DNA from: Bugula neritina
Lineage: Eukaryota; Animalia; Bryozoa
Length of the DNA stretch: 64,000 nucleotides
Assembly (NCBI GenBank): GCA_964035545.1
Contig: OZ037771.1
Location: forward strand, 3,297,628-3,361,627
Direction of reading: 5' to 3'
In this document: positions 14,501 through 37,725 of the stretch, in pieces
Layout: the number at the start of each line of letters is the position of its first letter
How positions within the stretch are numbered: the first letter of the stretch is position 1
The notes under the pieces: model-generated
What the model saw: only the letters and a program-made list of their open reading frames with translations
The model's database searches: none
What the model was told of the DNA's origin: nothing
Position numbers and translations under genes: made by a program

Positions 14501-15239
14501 TTTCACTATTTTAGGACTGGAAAACGTTGAGCTAAGAGTGATGGATGCGTGCAATGCCTCACCAGACTTGAATGAAAAGTTTGACCTCGCGATGATGTTT
14601 GACGTTTATCACGACGTCCCATACCCTGATAAACTGATAGCCGGAATTCACCGTATCCTAAAGCCGGGAGGCATGTTACTGATGAATGACATCGGGGCTC
14701 ATGAGTCTATCACAGCGAACAAAGAAGAAAATGGTACACACAATTTCTTAAAACAACGCGCACAGCCAATATAGTTTTACCATTTTAAGATTACAGAAAG
14801 TCACTTTTGCAAGCTCTCCTACTCATAAGGTGTTGAAAGTGTGATAAGTTGACAATGATAACCTGGTATAAGAAGCTGCTAGTAAAAACCTACCTTTAGA
14901 CAATCGGTTTACCCCAAAATATGTTTTTTAAATTTGGCATTATATATAAGTTGCATATTATATCATCAGCTGTAGTGTATGTAGTATCTTAATGCAGGTA
15001 GTTATTTAAATCTATAGATAAGAGCAGTATTCTATGTGTTTTTTGTAGCCACCATGTTTGGCATGTACTACACAATTAGCTCACTGTACTGCATGCCTAC
15101 CTCCTACAAATACCCAGATGGTGCAGGTCTCGGTGCTTGTGGTGGCATGGAGCTGTATGAAAGGAAACTCAAAGACGTATTTACTGATGTTCGGAAAGTG
15201 GCTAAAGACGTAGGACTGTTTTTTCTCTGTACAAAATAA
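11597..15239 (+). CDS. Rv2258c-like SAM-dependent methyltransferase (N-terminal winged helix + class I MTase), paralogue A, 7 exons
   Basis: GTRLGLFE...KERYIREWINGM, CFPVDGP, YPVLHEF, VVEVGCGAA, FDVYHDVPYP, LKPGG and SLYCMPTS..GAGLG, colinear with the Rv2258c family as I recall it. Confidence 0.88.
13124..13318 (+). mobile_element. tRNA-derived SINE, diverged copy
   Basis: Alignable to 50179-50385 (gatgttaggaaaagcatccagtc...aaaaaccgtttccattagggg...cagggata). Confidence 0.7.
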
Positions 15240-15600
15240 TCAGTCACACCTACAACTTATCGGTCAGTTTATACAATCCATTGATAGTATATACAAGAAG
15301 ATAAGAAGCTGATTTGTTATAATTTGTTTTAGAATTAAAATACTAAACAAACTACAAAAATGTTGGAATAAATTTCTGTTCATCAATAAAAAACTAAAAA
15401 TTTTATTGCTGAAAAAATCAACTATCAAAACTAATAATCAATGATATAATCAAAATATTTCATCATTTGATCTTTAGAAAAATACTAAAGATTATTGCTA
15501 TTAATACATATCAGACTAGAAATACTGCTACAGCTATGCTCAACAATCAAAAGCTCCAATCTTGTAAATTAGCCTATTTTTAACTCAAACAGATTCAGGT

Positions 15601-22199: not shown

Positions 22200-22649
22200 T
22201 CAATTCGAGTAGTGATACTTGACAACGCACACTCCATTTACGCACTGACTGTAATGATTTTGAGCAAACATGATTACCCTCTTGAATTCTCGATCACTTG
22301 CAAGACTAAAGTAAATTTTATACAAGACAAAATCGTGTTCATTTAGTTTCCTACAATCAATGAAATCACGGTGTTGAGATCTTGTACATGTGAATTCACC
22401 ATCCGGCAACTGGCGATAGTTCCATTTGAATGTTCCCAAGTTCTTGTAACTTCCATTACCATCCGACTTAACGTCATCCAGTGAGTATTTAGATAGATCA
22501 ACAAAGAATGTGCAGCTGTGTTGAACTTTGTATGGTAGTTGGGGAGAAAACTGAAGAGATTTGGAAGTTATGAGCTTTAGCAGGGCTGTGTTATGTAAGC
22601 TCACATTAGCCCTAAAATCCAAAGAACTATCTATAGTTATCAGGCTAGT
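22200..22649 (-). CDS. Variable terminal exon 13: beta-rich domain of uncertain family (FFVDLSKYSLDDVKSDGNGSY...FKRVI)
   Basis: Acceptor tcacctcctag|ACT at 22649 is phase 0; open to the stop at 22200. Confidence 0.65.
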   Translation of the reverse strand, partial: TSLITIDSSLDFRANVSLHNTALLKLITSKSLQFSPQLPYKVQHSCTFFVDLSKYSLDDVKSDGNGSYKNLGTFKWNYRQLPDGEFTCTRSQHRDFIDCRKLNEHDFVLYKIYFSLASDREFKRVIMFAQNHYSQCVNGVCVVKYHYSN

Positions 22650-23294
22650 CTAGGAGGTGACCAGCAGCTAGTAATCGAATAACTTTCTATTTAAGAAACA
22701 CATGCACGGCTCTTAATAAATAACAACTTTGACTACTGCAAGTTCTCATTATTTCTGCCTAATGAGAGAGTTGTGTTAGAACTTAGAAGCATGCTTTCGT
22801 CTCCTACCAACATTTCAGGCAAAGTTTTATCTTTTTCAAAGTAAAAAGCACTTTGTTTTTAACCAAAGAAAAATGAAACTTGCGTGTTAAGAGAAATTTA
22901 TAGCAACTGCAGCGCAAATATTTTGTATATTTTATTTTTTTATATCGATTGTCATATGATCTTTTGATATATTATCAGAGCTTCACCACTGCAGTTGTTT
23001 TCAGAAATATTTACAAAAAATATTCCATTTACTCCAAACGCACTTTGCCAAGAAATGCTCGTATAATACGAGAATATACTTCTACAATCTAAAATACTCT
23101 TGTCAATATAACAGCATGTGACACACATTTGAAGTATACATTATAAAGTTTTCTGCAATAAAAGTTGGAGCCAATTTTTCTAGATAACGTGTAGAATCGA
23201 TGGTTACCATAAACAAATTAAAATATATTTGAGTGATAATTAGATTGTAGCACCAAAATAACAATAGCAAAACTAAAATTAAAGATGAAAAGAA

Positions 23295-23624
23295 TTAATG
23301 ATTGGAGCTTTCAACGAGTTTGAGAAAATCTGAGCAGAAAGAGTCCATTTCATCTGCGGATTTGGCTGTGAACAAGAAATGGTTTTTAATCTTTTTTGTC
23401 ACATAACCAAATCCTGCCAGAGCCATGCTGGACAGAAAATTTCTAGTTCGTTCAGCTGTATACCGATTGTTAGAATCAGGGGGTGCTGATTTCGCACATA
23501 ATACATTTCTAGCAGTGATTGTTCGGTCAACGTTACGATTGGCTAGAATAATGACCCTGTGAACATACTTTTTGTAAAGTAAAACAAGATCCTCTTTTCG
23601 GAATAGACCAGAATCAAGGACTGC
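23295..23624 (-). CDS. Variable terminal exon 12: winged-helix-like domain, subfamily A
   Basis: Acceptor cattgcag|GCA, phase 0; close paralogue of exon 11. Confidence 0.8.
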   Translation of the reverse strand, partial: AVLDSGLFRKEDLVLLYKKYVHRVIILANRNVDRTITARNVLCAKSAPPDSNNRYTAERTRNFLSSMALAGFGYVTKKIKNHFLFTAKSADEMDSFCSDFLKLVESSNH

Positions 23625-25111
23625 CTGCAATGTACACAACTAAAGAGTTCATATCAAATGGTGTTTCATCTACATATTGTCCTGGTATATTTCAAAGTTA
23701 TGAGCTGATTATGAGCCAATCAAAATTTGAGGAAATTTTAGAGGAATCGGCACAGGATTATTGAGCAATTAAAATTCTATACTCTGAAGACCAAATAAAT
23801 GCATAACCAATGCTCTATAGTCTCAATGCTTTAGATGTAGCCTCAGTTCTGAATTGATATGGTCAAGCGATTACAAGAAATAAAGACTTTTACAAGAGCA
23901 AAAACATGCAACGTAATTTTGATGTCCAAATTATTATAACACTTGAAAACGGCCCCAACTTTTTTGCAGAAAACTTACACATTTCAATATCAACATACCT
24001 GCTACAGTTTTGAAGCGGTATTATTTGAGATGCCAATTGATCTGTTTTCTACAAATACCCCAAACTTGACATTTGAAGAAAGTGATTGCACACTGCGAAG
24101 TCAGTTTTGGTCAGAACTTAATATGAAGTATGTATCTCGTGCCCCCCACCCTCACTTTAGTGCCAGCTTCTTTCTAACAAGTGTGGATATTTCTAGACAG
24201 AATAGGGGGAAATTATTACTATATTCAATACTGACATGCTTTTTTCGAGAACTTGTTCTATGTAAAAAAATTAGGATATATGACCAAGAGTTATACCTAT
24301 ACATTATTTTTAAGCCTGATACTAAATTTTTTGTATCAGAATATATTACGTGTGTTTGTGTGTGTGCTTAAAAATCTTGTGATTTAAAATTTTTTTAAAC
24401 CAGCTGTTCTTGCTCACAAAATTGAAATTCATCAAACCGGCTATACATTTTTCTATTATTTGTAACCTTGTTTTTATTGAAAACTGTTTGGGTAGGATTT
24501 AGGAAAAACTGGTGCAATTGAAAGTCAAGCATAGTTTTGCATGTATGTATTGCTCCTGTTCAACACGATCAATCTTAAATTAGTTGTATTCGGCTCAATA
24601 GATTGCATATATTACAGGCGCAAGGAGCAGAAAAGGAGACAAGCATAGCACTTGCTATTAATAGAGGCAACAGGGTTGGGAAAATATTGTTGTTGTCTAA
24701 CAGTAAAATTTTACAAATACTTGCTAGATATGAAGGGCAACTCTGTTAGGAGGTAGGATGATGGTTATTGTGAGGTATGTGCAAGTTCTTCTCATTAGGT
24801 TGTAAAATCATTACAGATACTTCTAATATAAGAACTTTCCAGCTCATGCTGAAGCTAATGTTATAGCTATCAAGTAAACTAATGTGAATGGATGAATCTT
24901 TAGTGGGAAGACTAAGATATGTTTATATGACCGAATACTGTTTCATACTTTCATAAACTACATAAAATATACATAACATGTATGTAAAATGTTAAAAAAT
25001 GTTGGAAGCATTTTAGCATAAAAAATTGTATCATTTAATATTTACAGGTCTGTTTTTAGGAACACAATTCTCACCAGAAATCATAGGTCTATCAGATGCG
25101 CAAGTATGAAC

Positions 25112-25447
25112 CTAATGTCTAGATAATTGAGCAAACTTCAGCAGTTCCAAGCAGAATGGGTCCATTTCTTCTGCTGATTTAGCAGTAAATGAAAAATAGT
25201 TCCTCTTCTTCAGTTTTTGAGTAACAGAACCAAATCCTGCCTGTGCCATGCAGGACAAAAAATCTCGAGTTCGTTCAGCTGTGAGTCTTTTACTATCATC
25301 TGGGGGTGCAGACTTAGCAGAAATTATGTCTCTAACAGAGATTGTTCTGTCAGTTTTACGGCTAGCTAATAGGATGACTTTTGAAACGTACTTTTTGTAG
25401 AGTAAAACAAGATCTTCCTTGCAGAAATTACCAGAATTAGGGTTCGC
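25112..25447 (-). CDS. Variable terminal exon 11: winged-helix-like domain, subfamily A
   Basis: Acceptor cattacag|GCG, phase 0; KEDLVLLYKKYV...TAERTRDFL..MAQAGFG. Confidence 0.8.
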   Translation of the reverse strand, partial: ANPNSGNFCKEDLVLLYKKYVSKVILLASRKTDRTISVRDIISAKSAPPDDSKRLTAERTRDFLSCMAQAGFGSVTQKLKKRNYFSFTAKSAEEMDPFCLELLKFAQLSRH

Positions 25448-25995
25448 CTGTAATGTACACAACTATAAAATTGACAAAAGAGCGCCCACTATAGTAAAAA
25501 GCCGCCATATACTTTGTATCTACTCTGAGGTAGAAAAGTTGTCGAATGCTGTTTGGAAAATATTAGGTTGCAGATATTGTATAAATTACTATTTTCTGTA
25601 GTAGTGGATGCAAAACTAAAGTACTTCAGGAATAAACAGACTGCAGAGATATATGTATATAAACAAAAAGTGTGCATTTTTGAACACTTGCAAAAGATGA
25701 TCCCTGAAGCTTTAATTTACATTATAAGACAACTTGATTTTGTAATTAAAACACTCAGGAAATTAAATTATGTTTTGTAGACAAAGTAACAGTTTTAATA
25801 GACGACTTATGCAGAGATTATGTTTTATAGAAAATATAGCTCAAAAATAAATATGTCACAAATAATAATTTTAGTTATCTTATTGTATTACATTATTGCG
25901 AAGTCAGTTTTGGTCTCGCCTGAAAACCTGATATCTAGAGACAAGCAAAACACTAATTACATGTGAATAGAATAGACCTATAGTTTATTAAACCC

Positions 25996-26382
25996 TCAAG
26001 AATAAAACGGGTAGGTCTGCGCAGCTAGTGCTTCGAGCTTCGTCTTTTGGCAGTCTGTTAGGCCATACTGGGTTAATTTAGGAGTTAAATAGTAGCTCTG
26101 CATGTATTCGGAATGAGCTACACTATAAATATTTAGCTGCTCAGCCGTTGCTGTAGGATTCTTAACAAACCCAACTTGTTCATTGTAGTCTCCTAAACCA
26201 TTCAATTTCAACTCATTGAACACTTGTAATACAGTAGATATATCTGGTCTTCTACCCCAACAGTATGACATCCGAATTTGACGACATGATACAAACTTTC
26301 CAGGAGACTTGAGTACTTTTTTGATGATACTGTTTCGGTTACATCTTTTACTTTTGGCAGCTTCTTCTAAATATGAATTTAC
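25996..26382 (-). CDS. Variable terminal exon 10: winged-helix-like domain, subfamily C
   Basis: Acceptor gtttttag|GTA, phase 0; IIKKVLKSPGKFVSCRQ...LKLNGLG...FVKNP. Confidence 0.75.
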   Translation of the reverse strand, partial: VNSYLEEAAKSKRCNRNSIIKKVLKSPGKFVSCRQIRMSYCWGRRPDISTVLQVFNELKLNGLGDYNEQVGFVKNPTATAEQLNIYSVAHSEYMQSYYLTPKLTQYGLTDCQKTKLEALAAQTYPFYS

Positions 26383-26506
26383 CTAAAAACCCACAACAGC
26401 AGTGAAATGCTTATGAAAGAAAACCCATAACCTGCAATATTCTCATCAAACAAGATGGAAATAAATCTTGCTTTTAAGGAAATCTACAAAGACTATTCAC
26501 CAAAAC

Positions 26507-26872
26507 CTATATTGCGCTACTTTTCCAATCGTCAAAAGTTGCTAAGCCATATAACTTCTGGTAAGTTTCTTGTTGATCTCTGCGAACACGGTCACTTGAA
26601 GAGCCGCCACAGGCAGATGCTGCATTCAATGTTTTTTTATAGGACTCTGGCTTTATGTCATATACCCCTAACATTTCACTAGTCAAATTAGGATTTTTAT
26701 AAAACACATTCCCAACGATGTGGCCATAACCTAAACTGGCTAACTTCTGCATAGAATAATAAATATTTTCCACAAACTCAGGTGTTCTCTGCTTGTAGCA
26801 TTGTGTAAATTCCAATTGCCTCTTACACACTGTGTTTCCTTTCAAACACAAGATCTTTCTCTCAAGAGATTT
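26507..26872 (-). CDS. Variable terminal exon 9: winged-helix-like domain, subfamily C
   Basis: Acceptor ttctgtag|AAA, phase 0; RKILCLKG...MQKLASLGYG...FYKNP. Confidence 0.78.
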   Translation of the reverse strand, partial: KSLERKILCLKGNTVCKRQLEFTQCYKQRTPEFVENIYYSMQKLASLGYGHIVGNVFYKNPNLTSEMLGVYDIKPESYKKTLNAASACGGSSSDRVRRDQQETYQKLYGLATFDDWKSSAI

Positions 26873-27130
26873 CTACAGAACAATTGATGGCTACACAGCT
26901 ACCAAACTTTTATATGAACTTCTTTACATCAACAATAGACTTAATATTCAATAAGTCAAAGGATAAGGTTGGTCTTTATAGACAGGAAGTAGATGTACTT
27001 TAGTTTACAAACACACAGCAACAAAAAACTTTATTACACATATCTGATAATGAATAAAGCTGAGAACGAAATCAGATTACAATTGTAGCATAACATGAAC
27101 ATATAAGCATGTGTTTATCTGCCACGTGGC

Positions 27131-27469
27131 TTAGAACAAAGAGTCATGAAGGTCATTCAGTTCTTTAAGTTTATCACTAGTCACTTGGTGATTTCCTTTA
27201 GTGGATGCCAGTTTCTGGGTGTATTCATAACGAGAAATTCCATAAAATTCAAGCTGTTGATCACTTAACCTTGGATTTTTAAAAAATCGTCCTTTTATTA
27301 GATAGCCATATCCAGTTTGCGAAAGGGCTTTCATAGCACGCTCAATTCTCAACCCAAGAGCTTTTTCATGGTTTTTCCGATTAATACAGTATCTAACTTG
27401 TGTTATGTTAACAACTTTTCCGTGGGCACATAGAATCCGTTGCACCAATAACTGCTGGCTAAGACTTTC
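27131..27469 (-). CDS. Variable terminal exon 8: winged-helix-like domain, subfamily C
   Basis: Acceptor atttttag|GAA, phase 0; ESLSQQLLVQRILC...; paralogue of exon 7. Confidence 0.8.
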   Translation of the reverse strand, partial: ESLSQQLLVQRILCAHGKVVNITQVRYCINRKNHEKALGLRIERAMKALSQTGYGYLIKGRFFKNPRLSDQQLEFYGISRYEYTQKLASTKGNHQVTSDKLKELNDLHDSLF

Positions 27470-27653
27470 CTAAAAATCCACAACAACATGCAGAAGAATA
27501 TGCCAGTTTAGCAAAAAATTTGGTCTCTATAGACAGGTGATTAGAATTTAGAAGACCAAAGTTAAAAATATTTTTTGACATAATTAAAAACCATTAAAAC
27601 CCTCAATTGCTTATTTTATGTACATTTTTGTAAAAGTATTTTCAACTAAATTG

Positions 27654-27992
27654 CTAAAACAATGTTTGGTGAATTTCCTCTAATTTTTTCAGCTGCTCTC
27701 CACTTATTCTGTAGTTGCCTTTGTTGGAAAAGAGTCTTCGGCTATATTCATCCCGTGAGATTCCATACATCTTCAATTGTTTGTCTGTTAATCGGGGATT
27801 TTTGAAAAACCTTCCTTTAATGAAGTAGCCGAACCCAGTATCAGCGAGTGTCTTCATAGTTGATTCAATTCGAAGTCCAAGGCCTTTTTCGTGGTTTTTG
27901 GAGCTGATACAATAGCGCACTTGAGTGATGTTGACAGCTTTCCCATGAGAACACAATATTCGTTGAACTAGTAATTGTTGACTTAGGCTTTC
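27654..27992 (-). CDS. Variable terminal exon 7: winged-helix-like domain, subfamily C
   Basis: Acceptor ctttgtag|GAA, phase 0; ESLSQQLLVQRILC...MKTLADTGFG...FFKNP. Confidence 0.8.
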   Translation of the reverse strand, partial: ESLSQQLLVQRILCSHGKAVNITQVRYCISSKNHEKGLGLRIESTMKTLADTGFGYFIKGRFFKNPRLTDKQLKMYGISRDEYSRRLFSNKGNYRISGEQLKKLEEIHQTLF

Positions 27993-28343
27993 CTACAAAG
28001 TGACACACTCAACTTTACATAGGCCTATAATTTACAGTATGGTCTTTATAGACAGTGTATAGCTATATTTGTATATTGAAAAACAGACTCCTTTTGCTCA
28101 ATTTTACATGGAAGTGTGAATATTTTATTTATTTCAGTGTTAGGCCAGTAGTATTTTCATAACCTATTGACGAAAATGGAAAACTAAGAACTTCATGATA
28201 TAAACTATATTGATGATTGAAAAATAAAATTTATTGTACATACGAGTTACATCATATGAACTCAAATTTATACATAAAATACATACCACTACACGCTGAT
28301 ACAATGAAATATGATTTACATTACCAAATTAGAAAATTTGAAC

Positions 28344-28718
28344 TTATATTTGGGCTGATTCACACCATGCCGATTCTGGTATTCCTAATACCAACAAAGT
28401 ACTCTTACAAAATGAATTGAGGGTATTCCACTTGTTTCTATAAAATGACACTTTTTTAGTTCTACCCTTTGCAACTCTACCAAACCCAATACTTGCAACT
28501 CTATACAAAAAGTTCTTCGCATTAGTTGCAGTGTACACTTTTTTTCCCAGTTCATTACGATCAAATGGACAATAGTGTAACTGCTGAATTCTAGTATGGG
28601 TTATCGCAATAACCGTATCGTCCATTGTAAGCAACCGTTTGATTTGGTATGCGAAATCTTTAACAAAATCTGCATCACTCATTGACAATATTTCTGATTC
28701 TTGTTGGATATTCAGTCT
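28344..28718 (-). CDS. Variable terminal exon 6: winged-helix-like domain, subfamily B
   Basis: Acceptor tgttccag|AGA, phase 0; YQIKRLLTMDD..ITHTRIQQ...ASIGFG; paralogue of exon 5. Confidence 0.8.
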   Translation of the reverse strand, partial: RLNIQQESEILSMSDADFVKDFAYQIKRLLTMDDTVIAITHTRIQQLHYCPFDRNELGKKVYTATNAKNFLYRVASIGFGRVAKGRTKKVSFYRNKWNTLNSFCKSTLLVLGIPESAWCESAQI

Positions 28719-29199
28719 CTGGAACAAAGTGCAAAAATTAAGACGTACAGAGCTGACACAGCACTGGACATGTGAAATTTTCATTGTAAGTCAGTTTCTT
28801 TGATTGTGAAATTTTAAACTTAATGACCAGTGCTTAAATTATGGCACCAAGTTACAAATAGTATTTTAAAAATGAGTTTAAGTCATTATATCAAGTGGAA
28901 TAAATATGAATAGCATGATTTCAACCAGCAAATAAATAATTATTGGGTCTTTATAGACGGTGTATACATTACAACTAAGTGTTAATCAGGAAACCCGCGT
29001 TCTATGAATAATTCACTAGAATTTAAATTGATCAACTGTATGTAATCAAAACTTATTATAATTGAAGACAGACTCGAGAATAGTGATTGAGAAATTTTAT
29101 TATGCGACCATATTAGTTTTGTGAAATATATACATATCTTAAAATTACAGCCATTAAATTCTATACAATAGGTTATTAACCAAAATTTCAAGGAAGAAT

Positions 29200-29574
29200 T
29201 TACGACAAAGCAGAAACCATCCACATAGACTCAGAAATTGCTAATGCTGCCAGAGTGTTTCTACAGAATGAGTTTAGATTTAACCACTTATTTCTATAAA
29301 ATGTTACTCTTTTTGTCTCACTCATGGAAACTGTGCCAAACCCAATACTAGCAATTCTACATAAAAAGCTTTTGGCTAAGGTAGCTGTAAAAACTTTCTT
29401 CCCTTTTTCGTTCCGTTCAAACGGACAAAAGCGAAATTGCTGAATTCTAGTGTGAGTTATCGCTGAGACAGTGTCATCCATTGTCAACAATCGCTTGATT
29501 TGATAGGCATAGCTTTTAACAAAGTCAGTATCACTCATTGACATTATTCCAGGTGGCTGATGGATTTTTACTTT
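29200..29574 (-). CDS. Variable terminal exon 5: winged-helix-like domain, subfamily B
   Basis: Acceptor ttttttag|AAA, phase 0. Confidence 0.8.
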   Translation of the reverse strand, partial: KVKIHQPPGIMSMSDTDFVKSYAYQIKRLLTMDDTVSAITHTRIQQFRFCPFERNEKGKKVFTATLAKSFLCRIASIGFGTVSMSETKRVTFYRNKWLNLNSFCRNTLAALAISESMWMVSALS

Positions 29575-29741
29575 CTAAAAAAACGAAATTATCTTTACAG
29601 ATTGAGAATAGAAGCCAAGAATCACATGTATCACATAAAAATATATTGACCCGAGACCATTAAATAAAAATTCAAACAAAGTTATGATGTACAAAATAGT
29701 GGTACCTAAGAAAATTCAAGAGCTGTAATACCATAACACTA

Positions 29742-30532
29742 CTAGGTGACCATATGCACATCTGGCATACCAGATTTTTCTTGTTCTAGACGACGAACAC
29801 GTTTCCAAAAGTATTCAAGCCAGCCTAAAATTATATTAAACACTAAAAGCAGTTGGTCTTTATTGCAGCAGACATGATATTATCTTGGAAATTTAGAACC
29901 ATATTATTATATTGTAAACATTACAGCCATGTCTGACCAAACTCACCATTTGAAGCTTTAAAAGTGTGATAGCCCAACTGTTGTGCGACTTCTTTTGCTT
30001 TAGTTTGAATTCCAACTCCTGTTGGAGTTTTCCCGGACGCTTTAAATGCCCAGTACCAATCAAGTATAGCAGCATTAATTTCAGCGTATGCATTTGATTT
30101 TAAAAGTCTCTGTTTTTTAGTGATGAAAGGATTGGAAAACCTAAACCATTCAGCCATTATTTTGTGCTTATTCTGGACAATGTTAGTTATTGTAAATTTG
30201 CTTTGACCATACTGTAGGCACAGAGCTTTTATTGATACACCACTGTCGTGAAGCTGGCAGCATTGAAACTTTTGTTCTAATGATAGTACTGTTGAAGATG
30301 GCTTGGTGTATGTATCTTTCATTTTCAGAGATGACATAACTCTTGATTGTTCAAGTGTAGTGGCACTCATAGAATCACCAACTTTAGATTTCAAAGCAAT
30401 GTCCTGATTAGAAGACGAATCAGCTGATTTCATGCCAAACCAATTGATGGAGTTATCTTCATTCATAGTTCTTTCATGATGTAGTAAACCATCGCCATGT
30501 GTGCTCAAAGGTGACTCATGCGAATTAAAGCT
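29742..30532 (-). CDS. Variable cassette 4 (two exons, 30532-29947 and 29824-29742): CENP-B/pogo-type psq HTH + Tc5 HTH DNA-binding domain
   Basis: Phase-0 acceptor cactgtag|AGC; LSLEQK..HDSGVSIKALCLQYGQSKFTITNIVQNK; splicing restores FKASNG|WLEYFWKR; no DDE domain follows. Confidence 0.85.
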
Positions 30533-30683
30533 CTACAGTGAATTAGTATGCCAGGTTGTTTATATAGAACTAATTTCGATATGCCCACTATAGAGGCTGT
30601 TTTGATGCCAAGAAAATAGGGAGGGGTGCTTTGTGATACATGTGATTCACAATAATCTAGTTAACACTGTTTTATAATTTCAC

Positions 30684-30716
30684 CACCTGTCTATAAAGAC
30701 CAAAACTGATTTCGCA
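30684..30716 (-). promoter_or_regulatory. Putative intronic RNA docking site
   Basis: Plus-strand CACCTGTCTATAAAGACCAAAACTGATTTCGCA; partial reverse complements at 29850, 28945, 28040, 27519, 26969, 25897 and 24094. Confidence 0.75.
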
Positions 30717-31132
30717 TTTTATGTTAAATGAAAACATGAAGGTTAGATTGATATTGAAAATTATATGAACTTGACTACCCATAGATTTACAATCGTTTGT
30801 AAATCTATAAGTTAAAAAACAGCTCGTAATTATTTGAAATATACAAGGATAATTCATTGCCATACCATGGCTTTAAAATAAAAATGTAACCAAGTCATAG
30901 ATAGTTCGCATAGTTTATACCACATCCAGCGTCATTTGCAATGTTGTGCCGGACATATAACTACATTTCTTAATAAAAAAAACACGCTACATTTTCAAAG
31001 CGACCGCAGAGTAATTGGCAAATTTATTATTTACAATTTTATTACAAAAAAAGATGTGAAAGTACATTAAAATATTTATTACAAAAATGAGGACTAGAAA
31101 ATCTGAAAAGCCATCCAAAAAGGCAATTGAAA

Positions 31133-31498
31133 TCAAAATACATAACTCTTCTTTTGCTTCCCAATTAAAAGTGGCCATAGCAATTGAAACCACCGAAGAT
31201 GAGATTTACTAGTGAAAGAAGCATCCAGCTCAGATCCACTTTGCGATTTCACTGCTCGGTTTACAATTCGAAGACAGTACTTAAACTTGTTACGTATTCT
31301 GTCCAGGCATTGGTGAGGACTATGTGGATGCTTGAGTAAGAATTCTTTAAGAACAGATTCATATGTTTGAGTAGTTCCAGTATAGTTTACTTCTGTTATA
31401 AGTTTCTTTCGATAAGCCTCATTAGATGTTATGATTGAGACCAAATCATTGACTTCTTCTAGCGACCAAGAAAGCTTTTGACATAGCTCCATATCAAT
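31133..31498 (-). CDS. Variable terminal exon 3: MADF/Myb-SANT-like (trihelix) domain
   Basis: Acceptor aattctag|ATT, phase 0; WSLEEVNDLV...YESV...RIRNKFKY...RWFQLL. Confidence 0.75.
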   Translation of the reverse strand: MDMELCQKLSWSLEEVNDLVSIITSNEAYRKKLITEVNYTGTTQTYESVLKEFLLKHPHSPHQCLDRIRNKFKYCLRIVNRAVKSQSGSELDASFTSKSHLRWFQLLWPLLIGKQKKSYVF

Positions 31499-32485
31499 CT
31501 AGAATTTCATGTAGATGGTTTATAAACGCATATCACCAAGCAACAGATTATGAGCTTACCATACAAAATCTCAGTAAAACAAAAAACATGTTCATTACGA
31601 GTTAGTTAGCTTGAAATACAAATTTGAACAAGTTTGAAAAACCATTATCAAACTCTATGCAACATAGGACAAAAAGCACAGTTGAGTGGACAGACAACTG
31701 CCTAACAGTGAACCTTTTCACAAATATTTTTATATTCAAAAATTTGTGCTTTACTGTTTGACTAAGTTGCAGTCAGCATATACATAGACAATGGATGCAT
31801 AAGCACAGTAATAGCTATAAACAAGTAATATAGTCTGGAAAACATGGCATAGAAAAAGTTTGGAGCACTTTGGCACACATGCTGATACAAATTATAAAAG
31901 TTTCAATTGAAAATTTTACCAAATTCCTAAATTCGATTGACAAGACTATGGCTAAAAATCTACTTACTTTGTGTACCAAATCTTGAGCATATCCCAGCAC
32001 AGTTCTTGAATGGTTAAGCACCATTTCATGGAAGTCCAAGTATTTGTAGACTATGCAGTATATACAGTATAGCTTTGCCATCGCGAAATTCATTTTGGGC
32101 GAAAACGACTAGGGTGTGGTATAAACTATGCTCGTTAAACAGTTGTCTGCCCATTAACAGACTGCTGCCCAGCCTTTGAGCTCTAAGTATTGCCAAAACA
32201 AACTATAGTTAGCATAGTTACTATAGCTGAAAATAGTACTGGCATTCCAATATTCAAAAATACTTTACACAATGGGGGACATTGTCTAGAGCATAGCTCA
32301 GAAGTAATGCCTACACTGCAGAAAATGAAGAGAGAGCAAGCATAAGAAATTGGGTAGTAAGAAATTATTTGTGGTAATATTGTTCTGGTGATCTTAATTT
32401 CTGGTAAACTTGAAGTCAACCATTTAATACTACATTCAGGTTTATTAGGTGAAAAATATGTAAAAAGTTCATTTTATAAAAAAAA

Positions 32486-32794
32486 CTACTGTAAACATCG
32501 AACACAAAACTCATTTAAGTCATCATGTAGACGGAATAAGATTTGTCCTTTTTGACCTTTTCGTATGGTACCGAAACCTGCACCAGTCATGCAGAGTAAA
32601 AACTGTAATGATCTGTTTCTTTTATGTTTCCCTTGACCATCCCGAGGACAGAACTTTCCCACGGTGAGGTCTCTTAGAGTCAATTCTCTACCCATATTTT
32701 CTAAACTTCTTGCTTTGTTCACAATTCGCTTCACGTGGGCTTTATACTTGCCAAATAAATCATCTTTTAGAAAATCTCCAAAATCTTCATTAAC
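32486..32794 (-). CDS. Variable terminal exon 2: winged-helix-like domain, subfamily A
   Basis: Acceptor tttcttag|GTT, phase 0; KDDLFGKYKAHVKRIV...FLLCMTGAGFG. Confidence 0.78.
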   Translation of the reverse strand, partial: VNEDFGDFLKDDLFGKYKAHVKRIVNKARSLENMGRELTLRDLTVGKFCPRDGQGKHKRNRSLQFLLCMTGAGFGTIRKGQKGQILFRLHDDLNEFCVRCLQ

Positions 32795-35036
32795 CTAAGA
32801 AAATGTGCAACTTGAATATAGTCAGAAACATCAATTTCATAATGAAACATGGATAAACTTGACTTCTGGATACAAGCCTACTATTGGTATAACTTAAACG
32901 AATCAGGCGACGTATTAGTTTTATAACTTATAACTTACACTAAACATGCAACAGTACTATTACCATGGCTTACATTGAGAGCAGATTGAATATTCACTAT
33001 CTAATTGCACAACATTATTGAGTCAAGGTAGAGTCATGAAAGCATAAAGATCAACTTCCAATCAATCCAAAATTATATTACTAAAAACTTTTGGCACAAA
33101 CATTTACCATTATTGTACAACAAGCAGGGAACAATAAATCATCTGCCCAATTATTTCACCCAGAACAAATTCAAATGTTGACTTTTCATAACAAAAACAT
33201 TCTTTTCATATGCTAATTAATTGACTGATGGATGATAAATTTTACTGTATCAATTAAAATTTACAATGTTTCTAGGTTAAATCAAAATCACTCTACAATT
33301 GATATTACAACAACTACACCACTTTAAAACTGCCTTTGGAAATTGCATTGCAAAGAGTTGCCAACACAAGGAAAGCATGTCACCATCTGAAATAGACTTT
33401 TATCACAGTGAAATATTAAAGGGTATATGCCCCCCCCCCCCCCCCCCCGTAAAATTGCTGACAGTTTGAAGAAAGCTATCAGTGGTCTCAACTTTCTATT
33501 TATTAATAAAAATTGAGATTCCTACATGGATTAGAGTATTGACTTGACGCTCAACAACTTTGCATTGTTCTCGAGGAAAGGTTAGCAAGTTTTCGCCAAC
33601 AGCTAGAGTAATTGTTGGGCACCAGAACGTATTACATGAGAAGCAATAATACATTGCATAGAGGAACACAACTCCTTAGGCAAGCAGGCAGTTTCACAAA
33701 TTCATCCGAATTGAACAAACATTTTCAGTTATAGACTTTAAAGCTGCTGATAAGATGCATATAGTAAGTGCCTATCTACCCTATCTAATACATAAGTTGC
33801 CCATCCTATTCCAAGTGACAGATTCTTACAGAAGCCATCAATTACAATATTTAAAGTAATTTAATATAATGTATACACACAGCTGTACATAAACAAATAG
33901 ACCCACACAAATAAAACCACAACTAATCAACAGTGTAATCATACATACAGCCATTACCATTCATATTTTCCTTACCTGATCCAACAGCAGCCACCAGCTT
34001 TGAGTATTCCAAGTTTTTCCACCAGTTATCACATTTCCTCAATATTTTTTGCAGTCAACCCACGGTTTCACTAGCAACTAGTGTTTATTAGCAGCAACAA
34101 CTTCAGTGTTTCCAAATATGTCACAGACTCTGCTTGAGATCATTTACTTTGAAATGTTCATATTGCAGGTACAAATAATAACACTATTGAAATACACAAG
34201 TAAAAATAGCATCTTGTAAATTGATGAGTAATATGAAAAAACATCCACTAGCAATAAGACGAAAAGCCACAAAACCTTAGGGGAACTTCACTACTACTAC
34301 TAACAGAAATCTCAATCTTATCACAAACATAAAAAAATGCTATATAAAAATCATGAATAAGAATTTGTCCACTCTTTAATACACTGAGCAGTAGTTCATC
34401 CCCACAGCAGTTAGCAGGTGAACGTATAAGAAGTTGAGACCACCGATTTCCTATGTTATGCTGTCTAGGTTACTTGAGTGTTAAGTGAAGGCAGTTATAT
34501 TGCCCACGCAGTGAAGAAGATGGCATTTAGAGACAGTTTAGATGCAGTATGAGGAGACATTGCACAGTGAAAACGCGAGAGTATATCCTGGGTAACACCG
34601 AAGTGGTACTCTATGAATATTGGAATGCCAACACAGCATTTTCACACTAACAGTGAAGTGGCCAGCAGCACTGGTGGTAGAAGAACTAGAAAGTCAAAGC
34701 ACTTTCTCATTTTTTAATTGAGAAAACTTCCTCAATTTGAAGAAGTGAAAATGAGTTTCTAGTACTTTTAACCACAAACTGCAGAAATCACACTGACTTG
34801 CTAGAGATGATGAGCTACGAATATGTATATTATATATTTTTAGAGCGAACAATCAAAACAAATAAATATATTAAATTTGATTTCAGGTTTCAATGGAAAA
34901 ATATTAAAAATCTGTGAGTCGGTATAAGTTTATACAATGTTTTGATTGGCGGTCATTAAATTATCAACTTCATATTACAAATCATGATATAAAAACCAGT
35001 CTGCCTGATTGACGACATAAGTGGCTAGCTAAGCGG

Positions 35037-35330
35037 TTACCCTATATCCTTCGAGTTAGTGAGTGTTTTTATGGTAGGTTTTGACCATACTCGGGTGGAC
35101 ACGATGGTAACACCGTGCTGACGCTTCAAGTGATTTATCATGTTACTTGTATTACCACCAGTGGACTTAATAACTTGTCTACAAGCTCTACAGACTGTAA
35201 AATCTCTGGAATTCTCCACAGACCCTTCTGCCAAAGTTTCAAAATATTTCCAAACCTCACTTCTAAAAGGGCGCGGAACTGTTTTATGCAGCTGAGTTGC
35301 TGGATTGGTGAGGTTACAAGAGTTCCGACT
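35037..35330 (-). CDS. Variable terminal exon 1: BED zinc finger
   Basis: Acceptor cttttcag|AGT, phase 0; RSEVWKYF...CRAC..VIKSTGGNTSNMINHLKRQH. Confidence 0.88.
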   Translation of the reverse strand, partial: SRNSCNLTNPATQLHKTVPRPFRSEVWKYFETLAEGSVENSRDFTVCRACRQVIKSTGGNTSNMINHLKRQHGVTIVSTRVWSKPTIKTLTNSKDIG

Positions 35331-35671
35331 CTGAAAAGACCAGATTCACGCGTCAACGAGCTGAGAAAGCAAATTCTCTTCACATCGGCTCATAACCTTC
35401 CTTGCAGGACTAAACACAGAACTCGTGCTTCCACATTGGTCGGGTATGCAAATTAACCTTCATTTGAGTAGCGAAAAGAAACACCACAAGTTTTTGTTGT
35501 CTTTTTTTTAGAAAAAAGGGGAATAAGGAATCTGAGGCCTCTCGAAGTCAGTGTGATTTGATAAGCATTGCAATGTGTAGCAACTTGAACCTTCAGAAAA
35601 TGCTCAGCCAGTTGGTGAACGTTCAAATTGTCACACGTTCCAATTTAAGAAAGAATGACATAAACACAAAC

Positions 35672-37725
35672 CTTTTGGCTAGACTGGCTAGGAGTAGGTT
35701 GAGAGTGGAACTGTGGACGATATATATGCTGATTGGGAGTCATACTGGGATAAGTCGACGAGATTGGCCCTGTGGGTATCTTTATTCCTGACAGCGGGCC
35801 CATAACAAAGTCTGGCCGTGACGGTGTTTCCTTTTTATACATGTGCTGCGGTGTGGAGGTGGTGGGAAGCGGGTTGATTGATTGTGAGGGTGTCATGGTT
35901 TGACTGTTGAATATGTTCATCATGGAGTCGATACTGGGGTCAGAGGGAGGAAAAACTACATCTACAAATGAAAGCATAAAAAGTGTATCAATTGTATGCA
36001 GCTTGGCTAAGGTTTACGATGAGCAAAGGTGTTAGCAATCATACATTAAAGAAACAGTAACATCAAAAGCTGTTGGGGAGCATCGTAAATAATTCTAAGA
36101 ATTAGAAAAACCTGGCGAAAGCAATGGAAGACCTACTAACCGGGCAATACATTCATATCCAGTTCTTTGTTGCGACTTGCACCATCTTGTTCCCCGACTT
36201 CCACCTTGATCTCTAGAATATCTGGGTCAAACTCGAATGGCTGTTGTTCAGTTGGGTCGTCCGAAGGTCGTTGTTCTGATTCCGAGTCTCGTTCCGTCTC
36301 AGGTTCATCCTACAGCAGAATGTAAGAGAAATACAGAAATTGGACGTTGTTTGGTTGTATGCAGTACCGACAGCCACATGAAGAAGTAAAGTGCTTGCGG
36401 TAACTCACCTTATTGGGTACATCTTCAAAGTCGAGTCCAGAGGGAGTTTCCGAGTCCTTATCAACAACAGGGGGGATATCAATGTAGCCCGGGCTGGCCA
36501 TCTCAGAGTCAAACTCCAAGCTAGCCGGCTCCATCGACACTATGTTAGAGTCCGCAGGATTGGTCTAATAAACAGGAAGTAAAAGAAGACTAACCAGACA
36601 TGTCTTACTAGACTCTAGAAAGAAAGACATGATGAAATGGCAAAGTTAAAAAATAGAACACAGCAGATAGAAATATTTATGATATCACATCATATGACTC
36701 ATGGTAATTATTTTTTGAAAACCAACTTTTGTTTCAACAGATTACTAGTCGAAAACTAAAGTAATGAGAGTCAAGGGTTTTAATTTAGTGCTAAACATGT
36801 CTGAAACAACAACATACAGCAGTCGATGTCATTATACAAAGGCGATGTGCTTACAGTGAGTGTAGGCATGCTGGAGGTAGCCACAGGTGTGGAAGTATTG
36901 TTTGATGAGGCTTGACTAGATGTTGGATTGCTGAGAGAAAAACCCGCCTTTAAGGGGGGCGGCACAGGAGGCGCCGAGAGTAGCACAGCCGACTGTGAGT
37001 CTGGATCTGAATCTACAAAGGAAAGACATGTATTTAAATCTGATAGGCTTTAAACTCCAAGAAAATGTTCACCTGGGAACACATACAGGTTAGCAGATAA
37101 TGGTGAGCACTTGACAGTACCTTCATTACGTGGGTGAGTGGTGCTAGAAACCCGTTTCGGTGCATTGACTTTACGCTTCTTGGTGTGAGATCTGAAATCT
37201 TGAGACATTATGCAGATGTGTTTGTGGTGCTCCATCTCGTGTGAGTAGAAGGCTTTATACTGACACTTATCACACTCAAAGTACCAGCTGAGTTTCTGAA
37301 TATAGCCGTCATGTGGCAGAGTCATGTCAGTGTGTTTGTGTCCATTAGGGTGCATCGACTCGACTATCTGTTGAAGAATATGACGCAGGGCTATCGAGAG
37401 GTTATGCTCTCCTGCAGTGTGCTACAAAAGAGGTAAAATGACAGTCGAAGAAAGGTATGTAGAGGCATGCTGATTAGATGAACTATAATTTCATTTCATT
37501 TCTACCAGAAACGTAAGCAAAACACATGTAATTATTACTACAATAACTTGTACTAGTTTTAAATACAGATGTGTGGGCTTGCATAAAACTAACAGAGAAC
37601 ATTATCGCATTGTTTTCATATTCAATAAAAAAAAATACATGAATTCTATCAAGTAACCAGAAGCTACTATAAAATATCACACCAGTTTTTATAGACATAC
37701 AAAAGGAAAAACTTACCACAACCAT
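35672..37725 (-). CDS. Common N-terminal exons (361 aa) of a putative multi-isoform transcription factor
   Basis: Exons 37725-37717, 37421-37121, 37012-36855, 36564-36409, 36309-36141 and 35961-35672 join in frame. They encode one zinc-finger-like motif (FECDKCQY..HHKHIC), a KKRK NLS-like motif, an IKVE SUMO consensus and an S/P/acidic disordered region, and end at the phase-0 donor AAG|GTTTGT. Confidence 0.8.

Follow-up and report, generated by a model that had tools for sequence, protein, structure and literature searches.

A bryozoan gene with an array of alternative last exons and putative RNA pairings for their choice

Introduction

Does one donor site in this bryozoan locus serve 13 alternative C-termini and, if so, how is one of them picked for each mRNA? 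The window (the whole stretch of DNA analysed, 64,000 nucleotides) comes from a cheilostome bryozoan, most probably Bugula neritina. Its minus strand holds what is likely, at a probability of roughly 0.8, a single transcription-factor-like gene with 13 alternative terminal cassettes, c1 to c13 (Table 1). The first-pass annotation had described the locus as an alternative-last-exon array like those of Drosophila mod(mdg4) and lola. That description holds as an analogy, with splice junctions, purifying selection on the tested cassettes and conservation in Watersipora behind it. The array behind one constant region is shown to be real for 7 of the 13 junctions; for the other six the case is indirect.

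Results

Common region

The exons were re-derived from the sequence, and the proposed common region held: 361 codons in six exons, all GT-AG, ending in phase 0 at the donor after 35672. This donor is the single branch point, the place where every joint and loose end in the contigs starts. RNA contigs reach 73–166 nt past exon 2, consistent with an upstream exon of undefined 5' end, and the junction of exons 5 and 6 is present in four of four runs (loose ends at 35963). The N-terminal C2H(C/H) module of ~70 aa in exon 2 occurs once in the genome and is conserved, with ten relatives at 44%–73% identity (phmmer) and 20 invariant columns in alignment A2. Its AF2 model has a pLDDT of 65, and a fold search with this predicted model returned no structural neighbour (top Z only 4.5). 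The KKRK..PKR stretch after it resembles a nuclear-localisation signal, a reading inferred from sequence alone. No Pfam family matched any common exon, which bears out the claim that a BTB domain is absent. The exon 5 motif is identical to its Watersipora counterpart at 12/12 residues (tblastn). The middle of the common region is acidic and is inferred to be disordered; together with the putative localisation motif, this is typical of transcription factors.

Table 1. Features of the locus, in positions of the window
Feature	Positions	Strand	Description
Exon 1, coding part	37717..37725	-	ATG and two codons; donor GT 37716-37715; sequence reading
Exon 2	37121..37421	-	N-terminal module: helix, beta-hairpin, C-x2-C-x12-H-x4-C finger; then KKRK..PKR
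Exon 3	36855..37012	-	Ser/Thr/Pro-rich, pI 4.2, no Pfam match; probably disordered
Exon 4	36409..36564	-	Acidic, pI 4.1; Watersipora exon matched weakly by tblastn
Exon 5	36141..36309	-	Acidic; 12-residue motif containing I-K-V-E
Exon 6	35672..35961	-	Last common exon
c1	35037..35330	-	BED zinc finger; Pfam zf-BED E 2.5e-11; joint 35672-35330 in run X5
c2	32486..32794	-	Winged helix; joint in X3 and X5, first-base polymorphism
c3	31133..31498	-	Weak Myb/SANT-like match; joint in X3 and X5; single copy
c4, first exon	29947..30532	-	CENP-B_N and Tc5-type HTH (Pfam; pogo-transposase-like DNA-binding domain); joint in X3, X4 and X5
c4, second exon	29742..29824	-	Completes Tc5 HTH, carries stop; sequence reading; no junction read seen
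c5	29200..29574	-	Winged helix (A1 profile); dN/dS 0.08; Watersipora orthologue; no junction read
c6	28344..28718	-	Winged helix, c5 paralogue; dN/dS 0.06; 63% identity to Watersipora ORF; no junction read
c7	27654..27992	-	Winged helix; X1 loose end at 35671 matches its start; dN 0
c8	27131..27469	-	Winged helix, c7 paralogue; dN 0; no junction read
c9	26507..26872	-	Winged helix (A1 profile); dN/dS 0.16; no junction read
c10	25996..26382	-	Winged helix; X4 loose end at 35670 enters its start; 42% identity to Watersipora ORF
c11	25112..25447	-	Winged helix; loose ends in X3 and X4 enter its start, >255 nt; dN 0
c12	23295..23624	-	Winged helix (A1 profile), c11 paralogue; dN/dS 0.15; no junction read
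c13	22200..22649	-	Basic 149-aa module, unknown fold; dN/dS 0.20; single copy; no junction read
Putative docking site	30676..30718	-	Intron just upstream of c4; two overlapping halves; complementary to six sites
Putative c6 selector	28943..28960	-	~240 nt upstream of acceptor; shares motif; score within shuffle noise
Putative c7 selector	28040..28055	-	63 nt upstream of acceptor; 16-nt perfect dock complement
Putative c8 selector	27519..27553	-	~70 nt upstream of acceptor; 35 nt, 80% complementary; strongest predicted duplex
Putative c9 selector	26969..26991	-	~119 nt upstream of acceptor; 18-nt perfect complement
Putative c11 selector	25897..25917	-	~470 nt upstream of acceptor; dock 5' half; 20 nt, 95% complementary
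Putative c12 selector	24094..24112	-	~488 nt upstream of acceptor; dock 5' half; 19 nt, 95% complementary
c1 stem arms	35545..35559 (upstream) / 34785..34799 (downstream)	-	15-nt perfect inverted repeat
c2 stem arms	34614..34630 (upstream) / 32240..32256 (downstream)	-	17-nt perfect inverted repeat
c3 stem arms	32112..32131 (upstream) / 30908..30927 (downstream)	-	17 nt perfect, 20 nt at 95%
c4 stem arms	30632..30648 (upstream) / 29619..29635 (downstream)	-	17 nt perfect; around both c4 exons

Terminal cassettes

All 13 acceptors are preceded by AG and open phase-0 frames of 97–203 codons, each with its own stop, as had been proposed. At the stop-trinucleotide frequency of this strand (0.062), a frame would stay open with p ~2e-3 over 97 codons and ~7e-5 over 149. 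The claim that most cassettes have AATAAA or ATTAAA after the stop also holds: 9 of 13 have one within 110 nt, whereas only 18% of windows of that length drawn at random do (p 8e-5). For c9, no hexamer of its own turns up in the 400 nt that follow the stop, and the AATAAA earlier credited to c4 falls within that cassette's intron. The description as 13 short coding blocks failed in part: c4 consists of two exons, with an internal donor (G/GTGAGT) at 29947/29946. The two-exon layout is likewise found in Watersipora, and the second exon is 78/80 identical in the sibling lineage. The cassettes all have a pI of 8.8–10.2 versus 4.1–4.2 for exons 3–5. Only c3 has a methionine within its first ten residues, and in c13 the first does not come before residue 127.

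Junctions in RNA contigs

Contigs join 35672, with GT..AG ends, to 35330 (one run), 32794 (two), 31498 (two) and 30532 (three runs from three studies), and others leave exon 6 at 35671 and carry on into the start of c11 (in two runs), c10 (in one) and c7 (in one). Seven junctions (c1, c2, c3, c4, c7, c10 and c11) are thus observed, in three or four studies and all at the acceptor coordinates first predicted. Those of c5, c6, c8, c9, c12 and c13 were not seen in the contigs of the four runs, and the support for these cassettes rests on low dN/dS and, for most, on orthologues or confirmed paralogues. One contig is unspliced between exon 6 and c1 and retains the whole intron, and the introns between cassettes are covered at a low level.

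Several limits apply to these data. The runs are only presumed to be RNA, and X1 clearly holds DNA too. The exon-6 side of the junction contigs is only 27–29 nt where the tool's safe length is 30 nt; 27–29 nt is the anchor length expected at a branch of a de Bruijn graph. Contigs cannot reveal full-length molecules, 3' ends or relative use. By the seven observed junctions, and by the indirect evidence for the other six, the donor after 35672 is spliced to one of the 13 cassettes per mRNA and, since each has its own stop, each mRNA carries one C-terminal module.

Domains encoded by the cassettes

A mix of unrelated DNA-binding folds had been inferred for the cassettes; this failed in part, as 9 of the 13 (c2 and c5–c12) are members of one unnamed winged-helix family. 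The rest are a BED finger, a CENP-B/Tc5 HTH, a weak Myb/SANT-like match (c3; Pfam Myb_DNA-bind_4, E 0.017, under that family's cut-off) and one unknown. The AF2 model of c2 has winged-helix topology at pLDDT 88, and the winged-helix model reaches Z 7–8.4 to MarR, ArsR and Zalpha. No member of the family was found elsewhere in this genome. The family diversified by exon duplication, and its paralogue pairs, at dN ~0.2 with dS saturated, are further evidence of selection on the cassettes. For c13 nothing matched in Pfam, PDB or Atlas, and no orthologue was found. That the cassettes are alternative nucleic-acid-binding domains is inferred from family, fold and charge, without binding data and, for c13, without fold evidence; the proposed DNA-binding C-termini have the same inferential standing. 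Winged helices can also bind RNA or protein. If the cassettes do bind DNA, one effector region would be directed to up to 13 target sets.

Selection and conservation in relatives

Comparison with the sibling lineage, at an intron divergence of 8.5%, gives dN/dS of 0–0.20 for c4–c13. Conservation in related species, put forward earlier as a check, is found in Watersipora subatra and in a third species, both of which carry the array. In Watersipora the orthologue shares the exon layout and keeps no fewer than eight of the cassettes in an unchanged order; it appears in NCBI only as "uncharacterized protein isoform X1-X7"; five sequenced isoforms share 409 residues and then diverge. The cassette of its isoform X1 is 67% identical to c4; that of isoform X5 is 79% identical to c8 and has its first residue at the homologous position. 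In the third species, eight winged-helix ORFs come after a cassette resembling c4.

Intronic elements and a model of cassette choice

Conserved intronic RNA pairings are likely to help select the cassette, an inference from complementarity, position and conservation; the pairing itself is untested. The introns contain five perfect inverted repeats of at least 16 nt versus none in 40 dinucleotide shuffles. Five of the putative selectors outscore the best of 50 shuffled docks, and the 15-mer core occurs nine times against 2.2 expected. The c12 selector is identical to that of c11; c10 and c13 have none. In the sibling lineage 206/209 positions of the RNA elements are identical, versus 91.5% in other intron (p ~1e-5); the dock is identical at 43/43, and the downstream arm of the c4 stem, which lies 45 nt upstream of the c5 acceptor, at 17/17. 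The dock, in its core, and the c4 stem (24 nt at 96% in Watersipora) retain both their place and their sequence in Watersipora and in the third species, where cassettes have only 30%–40% protein identity, and show compensatory pair changes (A-U to G-C, A-U to U-A). In the third species six selectors score higher than any shuffle, and a winged-helix ORF follows closely after each of them; Watersipora has only one clear selector. The evidence for the c1–c3 stems comes from this species only.

We propose that one long pre-mRNA is made and that the cassette is picked with the help of competing pairings. Short perfect stems would loop out the proximal cassettes c1, c2, c3 and c4, and the dock would pair with one selector at a time (c6, c7, c8, c9, c11 or c12). 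Such a pairing may draw the acceptor near, mask the skipped acceptors and poly(A) sites, and offset the advantage of the cassettes transcribed first.

Discussion

Alternative explanations

The most basic objection is that a number of the cassettes might be small genes in their own right or ORFs without function, with junctions that are assembly artefacts. The short exon-6 anchors and the six cassettes without junction evidence speak for it. Against it, independent studies place the joints precisely at GT-AG boundaries, two of the joints lie on contigs with more than 255 nt of cassette, the tested cassettes are under purifying selection and mostly lack a start codon, and NCBI has modelled the Watersipora isoform set alike; we regard this explanation as all but ruled out. 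It is also conceivable, though improbable, that the cassettes are not DNA-specificity modules: the winged helices and c13 might bind RNA or proteins, or alter localisation or regulation, in which case the gene would not be a multi-specificity transcription factor. The top structural matches are indeed generic (ribosomal protein, Zalpha for Z-DNA/Z-RNA, LOTUS and ScpA winged helices among them), no family assignment was found, and c13 matches nothing. On the other side, c1 and c4 fall in DNA-binding families, every cassette is basic, and the common part combines a putative localisation motif with an acidic region as transcription factors typically do.

If the array is granted, its intronic elements might still not act by RNA pairing, being by-products of cassette duplication in which selectors were copied together with their exons, remnants of transposon ends or protein-binding motifs, with the choice left to splice-site and poly(A)-site strength and protein factors. 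The selectors are direct repeats of one another (family D3) beside duplicated cassettes, the core motif is partly palindromic, and the inverted repeat flanking c4 could derive from terminal inverted repeats, since c4 encodes a pogo-type domain; a scanning model can, moreover, account for 3' cassette choice without pairing (Pan et al., PMC6191721). We nevertheless think this unlikely. Three species whose introns otherwise cannot be aligned have kept the dock, the only inverted copy, and the arms of the c4 stem in the same positions, and their paired bases have changed in a compensatory way; the elements are conserved far above neighbouring intron; and the cassettes c1, c2 and c3, unrelated to one another, are each flanked by a perfect stem that differs from the other two. 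A still weaker candidate is trans-splicing as in mod(mdg4), in which at least some of the cassettes would be transcribed apart from the common exons, from promoters of their own, and then joined to them in trans, with the dock–selector pairings bridging two RNAs. The isoforms of mod(mdg4) are made only in this way (PMC13490949, PMC6237743), RNA pairing is reported to aid trans-splicing of chelicerate sDscam (PMC9258826), and contigs cannot separate cis from trans for the distal cassettes. Yet the cassettes share one strand and follow the donor directly, in a single order, the unspliced exon 6–c1 contig and the intronic cover between cassettes point the other way, and the c1–c4 stems make sense only on a continuous RNA.

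Comparison with known systems

For the proposed cis pairing, the nearest precedents are Drosophila PGRP-LC, CG42235 and Pip, with competing RNA pairings in their 3' variable regions (Pan et al. 2018, PMC6191721). There too one dock can base-pair with selectors that precede the alternative 3' cassettes, only one pairing can form at a time, and the choice is tied to alternative 3'-end formation. The bryozoan gene differs in having 13 cassettes and six putative selectors, and in the place of its dock, which lies 5 kb downstream of the donor; the three cassettes in between each have a loop-out stem to themselves. Those systems are described as lineage-restricted, whereas the bryozoan one is kept across genera but lacks mutational evidence. 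Dscam1 exon 6 (Dong et al. 2022, PMC8791459) likewise has a cluster-wide dock with selectors, and extra 'balancer' stems, which shift the choice from proximal variants, by looping them out, to distal ones and so work against a 'first come, first served' rule. Dscam variants, however, are internal exons of a cell-surface receptor and must be mutually exclusive; in the bryozoan gene they are terminal exons, which rules out splicing one to the next, and the role of pairing would thus lie in access and balance and not in exclusivity. As in ZBED proteins, CENP-B and pogo-derived genes, c1 and c4 are transposase-type DNA-binding domains without a catalytic core. Unlike those domesticated proteins, they serve as optional terminal exons of a host gene. 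They are single-copy, a statement that rests on c3 and c13 and on the conservation of c4 in three species, and they are under strong purifying selection.

By analogy, the gene most resembles lola and mod(mdg4) (with smaller sets in fruitless, broad and tramtrack), Drosophila genes whose BTB proteins receive alternative C-terminal zinc-finger exons. The shared plan is a constant N-terminus, one donor that is joined to a single member of a large, mutually exclusive set of 3' exons or groups of exons, variable exons with their own stop and 3' end that encode a DNA-binding module (inferred here), and multiplication by tandem duplication. The parts are different. The host is a bryozoan and not an arthropod; in place of BTB, the constant part is an unnamed zinc-finger module and an acidic disordered region; and instead of C2H2 or FLYWCH fingers, the modules are a new winged-helix family, BED, a Tc5/CENP-B HTH and others. 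Whereas mod(mdg4) relies on trans-splicing only (PMC13490949), the bryozoan cassettes lie on one strand and bear signs of transcription in cis.

One donor and thirteen terminal cassettes

The array comprises 13 alternative terminal cassettes (c1 to c13) on the minus strand, all downstream of a common region of six exons. Rereading of the minus strand confirmed the claim of the first-pass annotation that this region spans 361 codons and ends in phase 0 at the donor 35672, with GT-AG boundaries throughout. Scripted translation from the 13 listed acceptors likewise upheld the cassettes: 13 of 13 follow an AG, are open in phase 0, and have their own stops, with open lengths of 97–203 codons. Frames of this length are improbable by chance on the gene strand, where stop trinucleotides occur at a frequency of 0.062, which gives a probability of 2e-3 for 97 open codons and 7e-5 for 149. 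The G+C content of the assembly is ~35%. A poly(A) hexamer (AATAAA/ATTAAA) had been claimed near the stop of most cassettes, and one is found within 110 nt in nine of the 13, compared to 18% of random windows (p 8e-5). No hexamer lies within 400 nt of the c9 stop, and hence the c9 mRNA may continue through c10. One claim about layout failed. Cassette c4 had been read as one block, which ran through an internal donor (G/GTGAGT at 29947/29946); a second exon completes its Tc5 motif and carries the stop. This exon is inferred from sequence, with no junction read. The two-exon layout also occurs in isoform X1 of Watersipora subatra, and the second exon matches that of a sibling lineage at 78/80 positions.

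Positions of common exons, observed joints, and RNA elements in the window
Feature	Position	Strand	Details
Common exon 1	37725-37717	minus	GT-AG
Common exon 2	37421-37121	minus	GT-AG
Common exon 3	37012-36855	minus	GT-AG
Common exon 4	36564-36409	minus	GT-AG
Common exon 5	36309-36141	minus	GT-AG
Common exon 6	35961-35672	minus	GT-AG
c4 second exon (inferred)	29824-29742	minus	
Joint to c1	35672 to 35330		run X5; GT..AG on gene strand
Joint to c2	35672 to 32794		runs X3, X5; first-base polymorphism; GT..AG on gene strand
Joint to c3	35672 to 31498		runs X3, X5; GT..AG on gene strand
Joint to c4	35672 to 30532		runs X3, X4, X5; GT..AG on gene strand
Loose end from exon 6	c11 start		runs X3 and X4; >255 nt
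Loose end from exon 6	c10 start		run X4; >255 nt
Loose end from exon 6	c7 start		run X1; one mismatch
c1 stem	arms 35559-35545 / 34799-34785	minus	15 nt
c2 stem	arms 34630-34614 / 32256-32240	minus	17 nt
c3 stem	arms 32131-32112 / 30927-30908	minus	17 nt (20 with one mismatch)
c4 stem	arms 30648-30632 / 29635-29619	minus	17 nt
Dock	30718-30676	minus	just upstream of c4 stem; complementary to six selectors
c7 selector	63 nt upstream of acceptor		
c8 selector	72 nt upstream of acceptor		
c9 selector	119 nt upstream of acceptor		
c6 selector	240 nt upstream of acceptor		
c11 selector	470 nt upstream of acceptor		
c12 selector	488 nt upstream of acceptor		

Contigs from four runs of four studies (X1, X3, X4, and X5, labels unrelated to those of the Watersipora isoforms) were placed on 6,000 bases of the window, 29990-35989. 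Joints from the donor to c1, c2, c3, and c4 were recovered directly. Their exon-6 side is just 27–29 nt, and the tool's safe limit is 30 nt; anchors this short are to be expected when an assembly graph with k=31 forks at a shared exon. Longer contigs leave exon 6 at 35671 toward sequence beyond the placed interval, and their loose ends, reverse-complemented for matching, correspond to the starts of three more cassettes. Seven of the 13 predicted junctions have therefore been seen (c1–c4, c7, c10, and c11), exactly where the first-pass annotation had put them. The exon 5–exon 6 junction is present in all four runs. Contig depth in X3–X5 is 122–215 for exon 6 and at most 49 for the cassettes, which fits a shared exon, though the tool cautions against ranking by depth. 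One contig continues unspliced from exon 6 across the intron and past the c1 stop, and there is some intronic cover, at a low level, between cassettes. Run X1 contains DNA as well, and the contigs are uninformative on isoform proportions, 3' ends, and strand. A 45-nt stretch right after the c3 stop (window 31084-31130) is missing from the contigs of all four runs, the DNA-containing X1 included; its ends are not GT-AG, so it is an indel between the reference and other individuals and not an intron.

Modules encoded by the cassettes

Homology searches were made with single exons and cassettes one by one, or with full-length database proteins. The cassettes had been described as a mix of unrelated DNA-binding folds, and this failed for nine of the 13. 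Cassettes c2 and c5–c12 are mutually alignable, with two invariant features in common, a G-x-G that follows the third helix and a single Phe within the wing. AlphaFold (AF2) run on this alignment predicts a winged helix of topology H1-S1-H2-H3-S2-W-S3 (pLDDT 88, pTM 0.80), whose structural neighbors include MarR, ArsR, Fur, and Zalpha (Z 7–8.4; TM ~0.6 to MarR/ArsR clusters). None of the nine matches Pfam at E up to 1, no Foldseek match to the model reaches E 1e-3 or better, and its Atlas neighbors are all sub-threshold. As Foldseek, VIA-align, and Atlas return generic winged helices alone, no named family can be assigned. A word-based search with the nine-cassette profile yielded nothing but ORF fragments from the same species. 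Against the whole genome the profile matches exactly these nine places and no others, and hence this winged-helix family is confined to exons of the locus.

The remaining cassettes are of other kinds. Cassette c1 is a BED finger (PF02892, 43.8 bits against a cut-off of 20.6, E 2.5e-11). Cassette c4 encodes CENP-B_N and HTH_Tnp_Tc5 domains, with PF03221 at 27.9 bits (above the gathering threshold of 22.2) and PF04218 at 21.0 bits (marginally below its threshold of 21.2); the Watersipora orthologue of c4 reaches 38 bits for PF03221. The Myb/SANT-like match of c3 (PF13837) falls below gathering (16 bits versus 27, E 0.017), and c3 has no sequence match in PDB and no alignment to a Myb-like tail from a Watersipora paralogue. 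Searches of c13 against Pfam, PDB sequences, Atlas, and its own genome returned nothing; an impression that it was CG-1-like was supported by no tool and has been dropped. All cassettes are basic (pI 8.8–10.2), compared to 4.1–4.2 for the acidic exons 3–5. That the cassettes bind DNA is an inference that rests in part on this basic charge; no binding has been shown.

The constant region

No common exon contains a Pfam family, and the claim that the region lacks a recognizable BTB domain held in Pfam searches to E 1. A full HMMER scan with exon 2, which is single copy in the genome carrying the window, found ten relatives at 44%–73% identity. Their alignment defines a ~70-residue module, invariant at 20 positions, that comprises a helix, a hairpin, and a C-x2-C-x12-H-x4-C/H finger; next to it comes a basic, nuclear-localization-like motif. 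The model of this N-terminal module is of middling confidence (pLDDT 65). It has no structural neighbor (best Z 4.5) and at most chance-level matches among PDB sequences, and complex prediction with two copies scored 0.15, which gives no verdict either way on dimerization. Three distant relatives (P0012, P0013, and P0014; 44%–57% identical) have an extra C-x-E-C motif before the first helix, which in combination with a pair of invariant His could conceivably make a second zinc site, an inference from sequence alone.

Conservation and selection

The closest annotated relatives are proteins of Watersipora subatra. Three of the ten exon 2 relatives are W. subatra RefSeq proteins labelled just "uncharacterized protein isoform X...", and cluster look-up recovered isoforms X1, X3, X5, X6, and X7, which have 409 residues in common and then diverge. 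The orthologous genomic locus (L014) has the same five large common exons with cassettes after them. In order along the gene these are a winged helix (isoform X7), the two-exon c4 orthologue (isoform X1, 67% identical), a c5/c6 orthologue (63%), a winged helix (isoform X3), a c7/c8 orthologue (isoform X5, 79%), a c10 orthologue (42%), and a winged helix (isoform X6). The cassettes are conserved equally to the N-terminal module (58%) or more, and the disordered middle far less, with the exception of a 12-residue motif identical in both species. The Watersipora gene lacks equivalents of the BED, c3, and c13 cassettes. Downstream of c13, both strands carry methyltransferase-like ORFs (window 12552-17958), and the Watersipora orthologue likewise has a methyltransferase gene downstream, indicating that the neighborhood is syntenic. 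Just upstream of that orthologue is a tandem paralogue (L014:1-6108) that shares the N-terminal module and has its own set of two or more alternative tails (P0009 and P0010), one of which looks Myb-like by eye, with no match in Pfam.

A sibling lineage, represented by a 9.1-kb contig (Logan SRR4020080) aligned to window 31335-22116, provides a measure of selection. Introns outside the features are 91.5% identical over aligned positions. Each of c4–c13 exceeds this value, with dN/dS of 0 to 0.20, including the cassettes without a junction read (c5 0.08, c6 0.06, c8 0, c9 0.16, c12 0.15, and c13 0.20). An 8-nt deletion in the sibling lineage alters just the final few residues of c9 (26507-26872). 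In the paralogous pairs c5/c6, c7/c8, and c11/c12, dN is ~0.2 and synonymous sites are saturated. Except in c3, no Met occurs within the first ten residues of a cassette, and in c13 none precedes residue 127; ORFs without an early Met need an upstream exon.

RNA elements in the array introns

A repeat search revealed an ordered set of complementarities in the introns of the array. Each of c1, c2, c3, and c4 sits inside a perfect stem, and five perfect inverted repeats of at least 16 nt occur in the region, versus none in 40 dinucleotide shuffles. The downstream arm of the c4 stem lies 45 nt before the c5 acceptor. At window 30925 all four runs have C where the reference has T; with this base, the one mismatched position in the 20-nt c3 stem would become a G-C pair on the gene strand, if position 32114, its partner, is unchanged.

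Just upstream of the c4 stem is a putative dock. Five of its six selectors outscore the best of 50 shuffled docks, and all six share the dock core, a 15-mer with nine occurrences in the window versus 2.2 expected. The 5' half of the dock pairs with the c11 and c12 selectors and the 3' half with those of c6, c7, c8, and c9; because the halves overlap, the pairings are mutually exclusive. No selector was found for c10 or c13.

Several of these elements are strongly conserved. In the sibling lineage, 206 of 209 positions are identical across the dock, the two c4 arms, and all six selectors, compared to 91.5% for other intron sequence (p ~1e-5). In Watersipora the dock core and c4 arms are at the same places in introns that are otherwise unalignable, and one pair of the c4 stem has changed from A-U to G-C; there is one clear selector only, of 20 nt, 78 nt before the isoform X3 cassette. 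A third, more distant species was found by searching a metagenome collection with the 21-nt dock core. On its contig the dock precedes a c4-like cassette (40% identical) by ~225 nt, and eight winged-helix ORFs (30%–35% identical) come after that cassette. Six selectors score above the shuffle maximum, each directly upstream of a winged-helix ORF, and there is a c4-type stem with further compensatory differences. Because the contig was retrieved with the dock core, the sequence match of the dock carries no weight by itself; the evidence from this species lies in the position of the dock, the selectors, and the stem. The 21-mer also occurs in four near-identical JGI contigs (L019, L022, L023, and L025; up to 12.7 kb, 38% G+C) that represent one unrelated locus, with G at the variable position of the core. 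Cassette-like ORFs are absent from these contigs; the match is therefore probably due to chance, and they were set aside. The dock and selectors meet the sequence-level criteria of a competing-pairing system, conservation in three species included; any effect on exon choice has not been tested by mutation.

A model for cassette choice and its alternatives

The data establish one donor with alternative terminal exons, a conserved architecture, and selection that acts on cassettes and RNA elements alike. The mechanism we propose goes further. One long pre-mRNA would be transcribed across the whole array, and the proximal cassettes, made first, would win by default. Their private stems would place them in loops, so that their acceptors and poly(A) sites are concealed and the path becomes shorter, and the dock would then pair with one selector and offer that acceptor to the donor. 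Formation of the c4 stem would present c5, and a c9 mRNA may end at the c10 poly(A) site. The proteins would all share the N-terminal module and the acidic region and differ in which of the 13 basic heads they bear.

The bolder reading is that a "one effector, many DNA-binding heads" locus arose in bryozoans independently of arthropods, built from an undescribed N-terminal zinc module and a locus-only winged-helix family, and with head choice by a dock/selector and loop-out RNA code conserved since the cheilostome genera split. We would put its probability at roughly 50%.

One rival is trans-splicing of separately transcribed cassettes, as in mod(mdg4). It is left standing by the contigs, which cannot distinguish cis from trans. 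Strand, cassette order, the unspliced exon 6–c1 contig, and the loop-out stems argue against it; that contig favors cis for c1 in particular and, with the low-level intronic cover, favors a single long primary transcript. We consider trans-splicing the poorer explanation, without excluding it for the distal cassettes. Another rival is that the RNA elements are left over from duplication or from a pogo-type element, a reading disfavored by their conservation in three species and their compensatory changes. It also remains possible that the winged helices and c13 have ligands other than DNA, and this is still open.

Comparison with known systems

To our knowledge, the arthropod BTB genes are almost the only described case in which a constant effector is followed by an array of alternative DNA-binding exons. 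Our literature searches found no such locus described outside arthropods and no paper on this gene, which public annotation knows just as "uncharacterized protein isoform X1-X7". The first-pass annotation had likened the array to lola and mod(mdg4), and this held as an analogy. Like those BTB-zinc-finger genes, the bryozoan locus has one common donor and many mutually exclusive terminal exons, as seen in the seven junctions and also in the Watersipora isoforms. The defining domains differ. The lola/mod(mdg4) type has an N-terminal BTB/POZ domain and variable exons that encode C2H2 or FLYWCH fingers, whereas the bryozoan locus has no BTB and its exons encode a BED finger, a Tc5/CENP-B HTH, a weak Myb/SANT match, and nine winged helices. 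Hence, it is an analogue of these genes and not a member of their family. Two unnamed protein modules are defined here, one the finger module at the N-terminus and the other the winged helix restricted to this locus. A structurally unrelated lophotrochozoan version indicates that multiplying transcription-factor specificities in this way arose more than once.

Regulation can be compared as well. Trans-splicing has been reported for mod(mdg4) (PMC13490949, PMC6237743); separately transcribed 3' exons are trans-spliced in mod(mdg4) and partly in lola. Competing RNA pairings have been described in 3' variable regions in flies (PMC6191721), and balancer stems in Dscam1 (PMC8791459). The mechanism proposed for the bryozoan gene would unite these last two. 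The locus offers a natural system of ~16 kb for how one donor picks among 13 terminal exons, with a candidate RNA code that is clear, conserved, and sequence-defined. If the bolder reading is true, this would be the first terminal-exon array controlled by RNA pairing outside arthropods, and one gene would have converged on both the protein logic of lola/mod(mdg4) and the RNA logic of Dscam.
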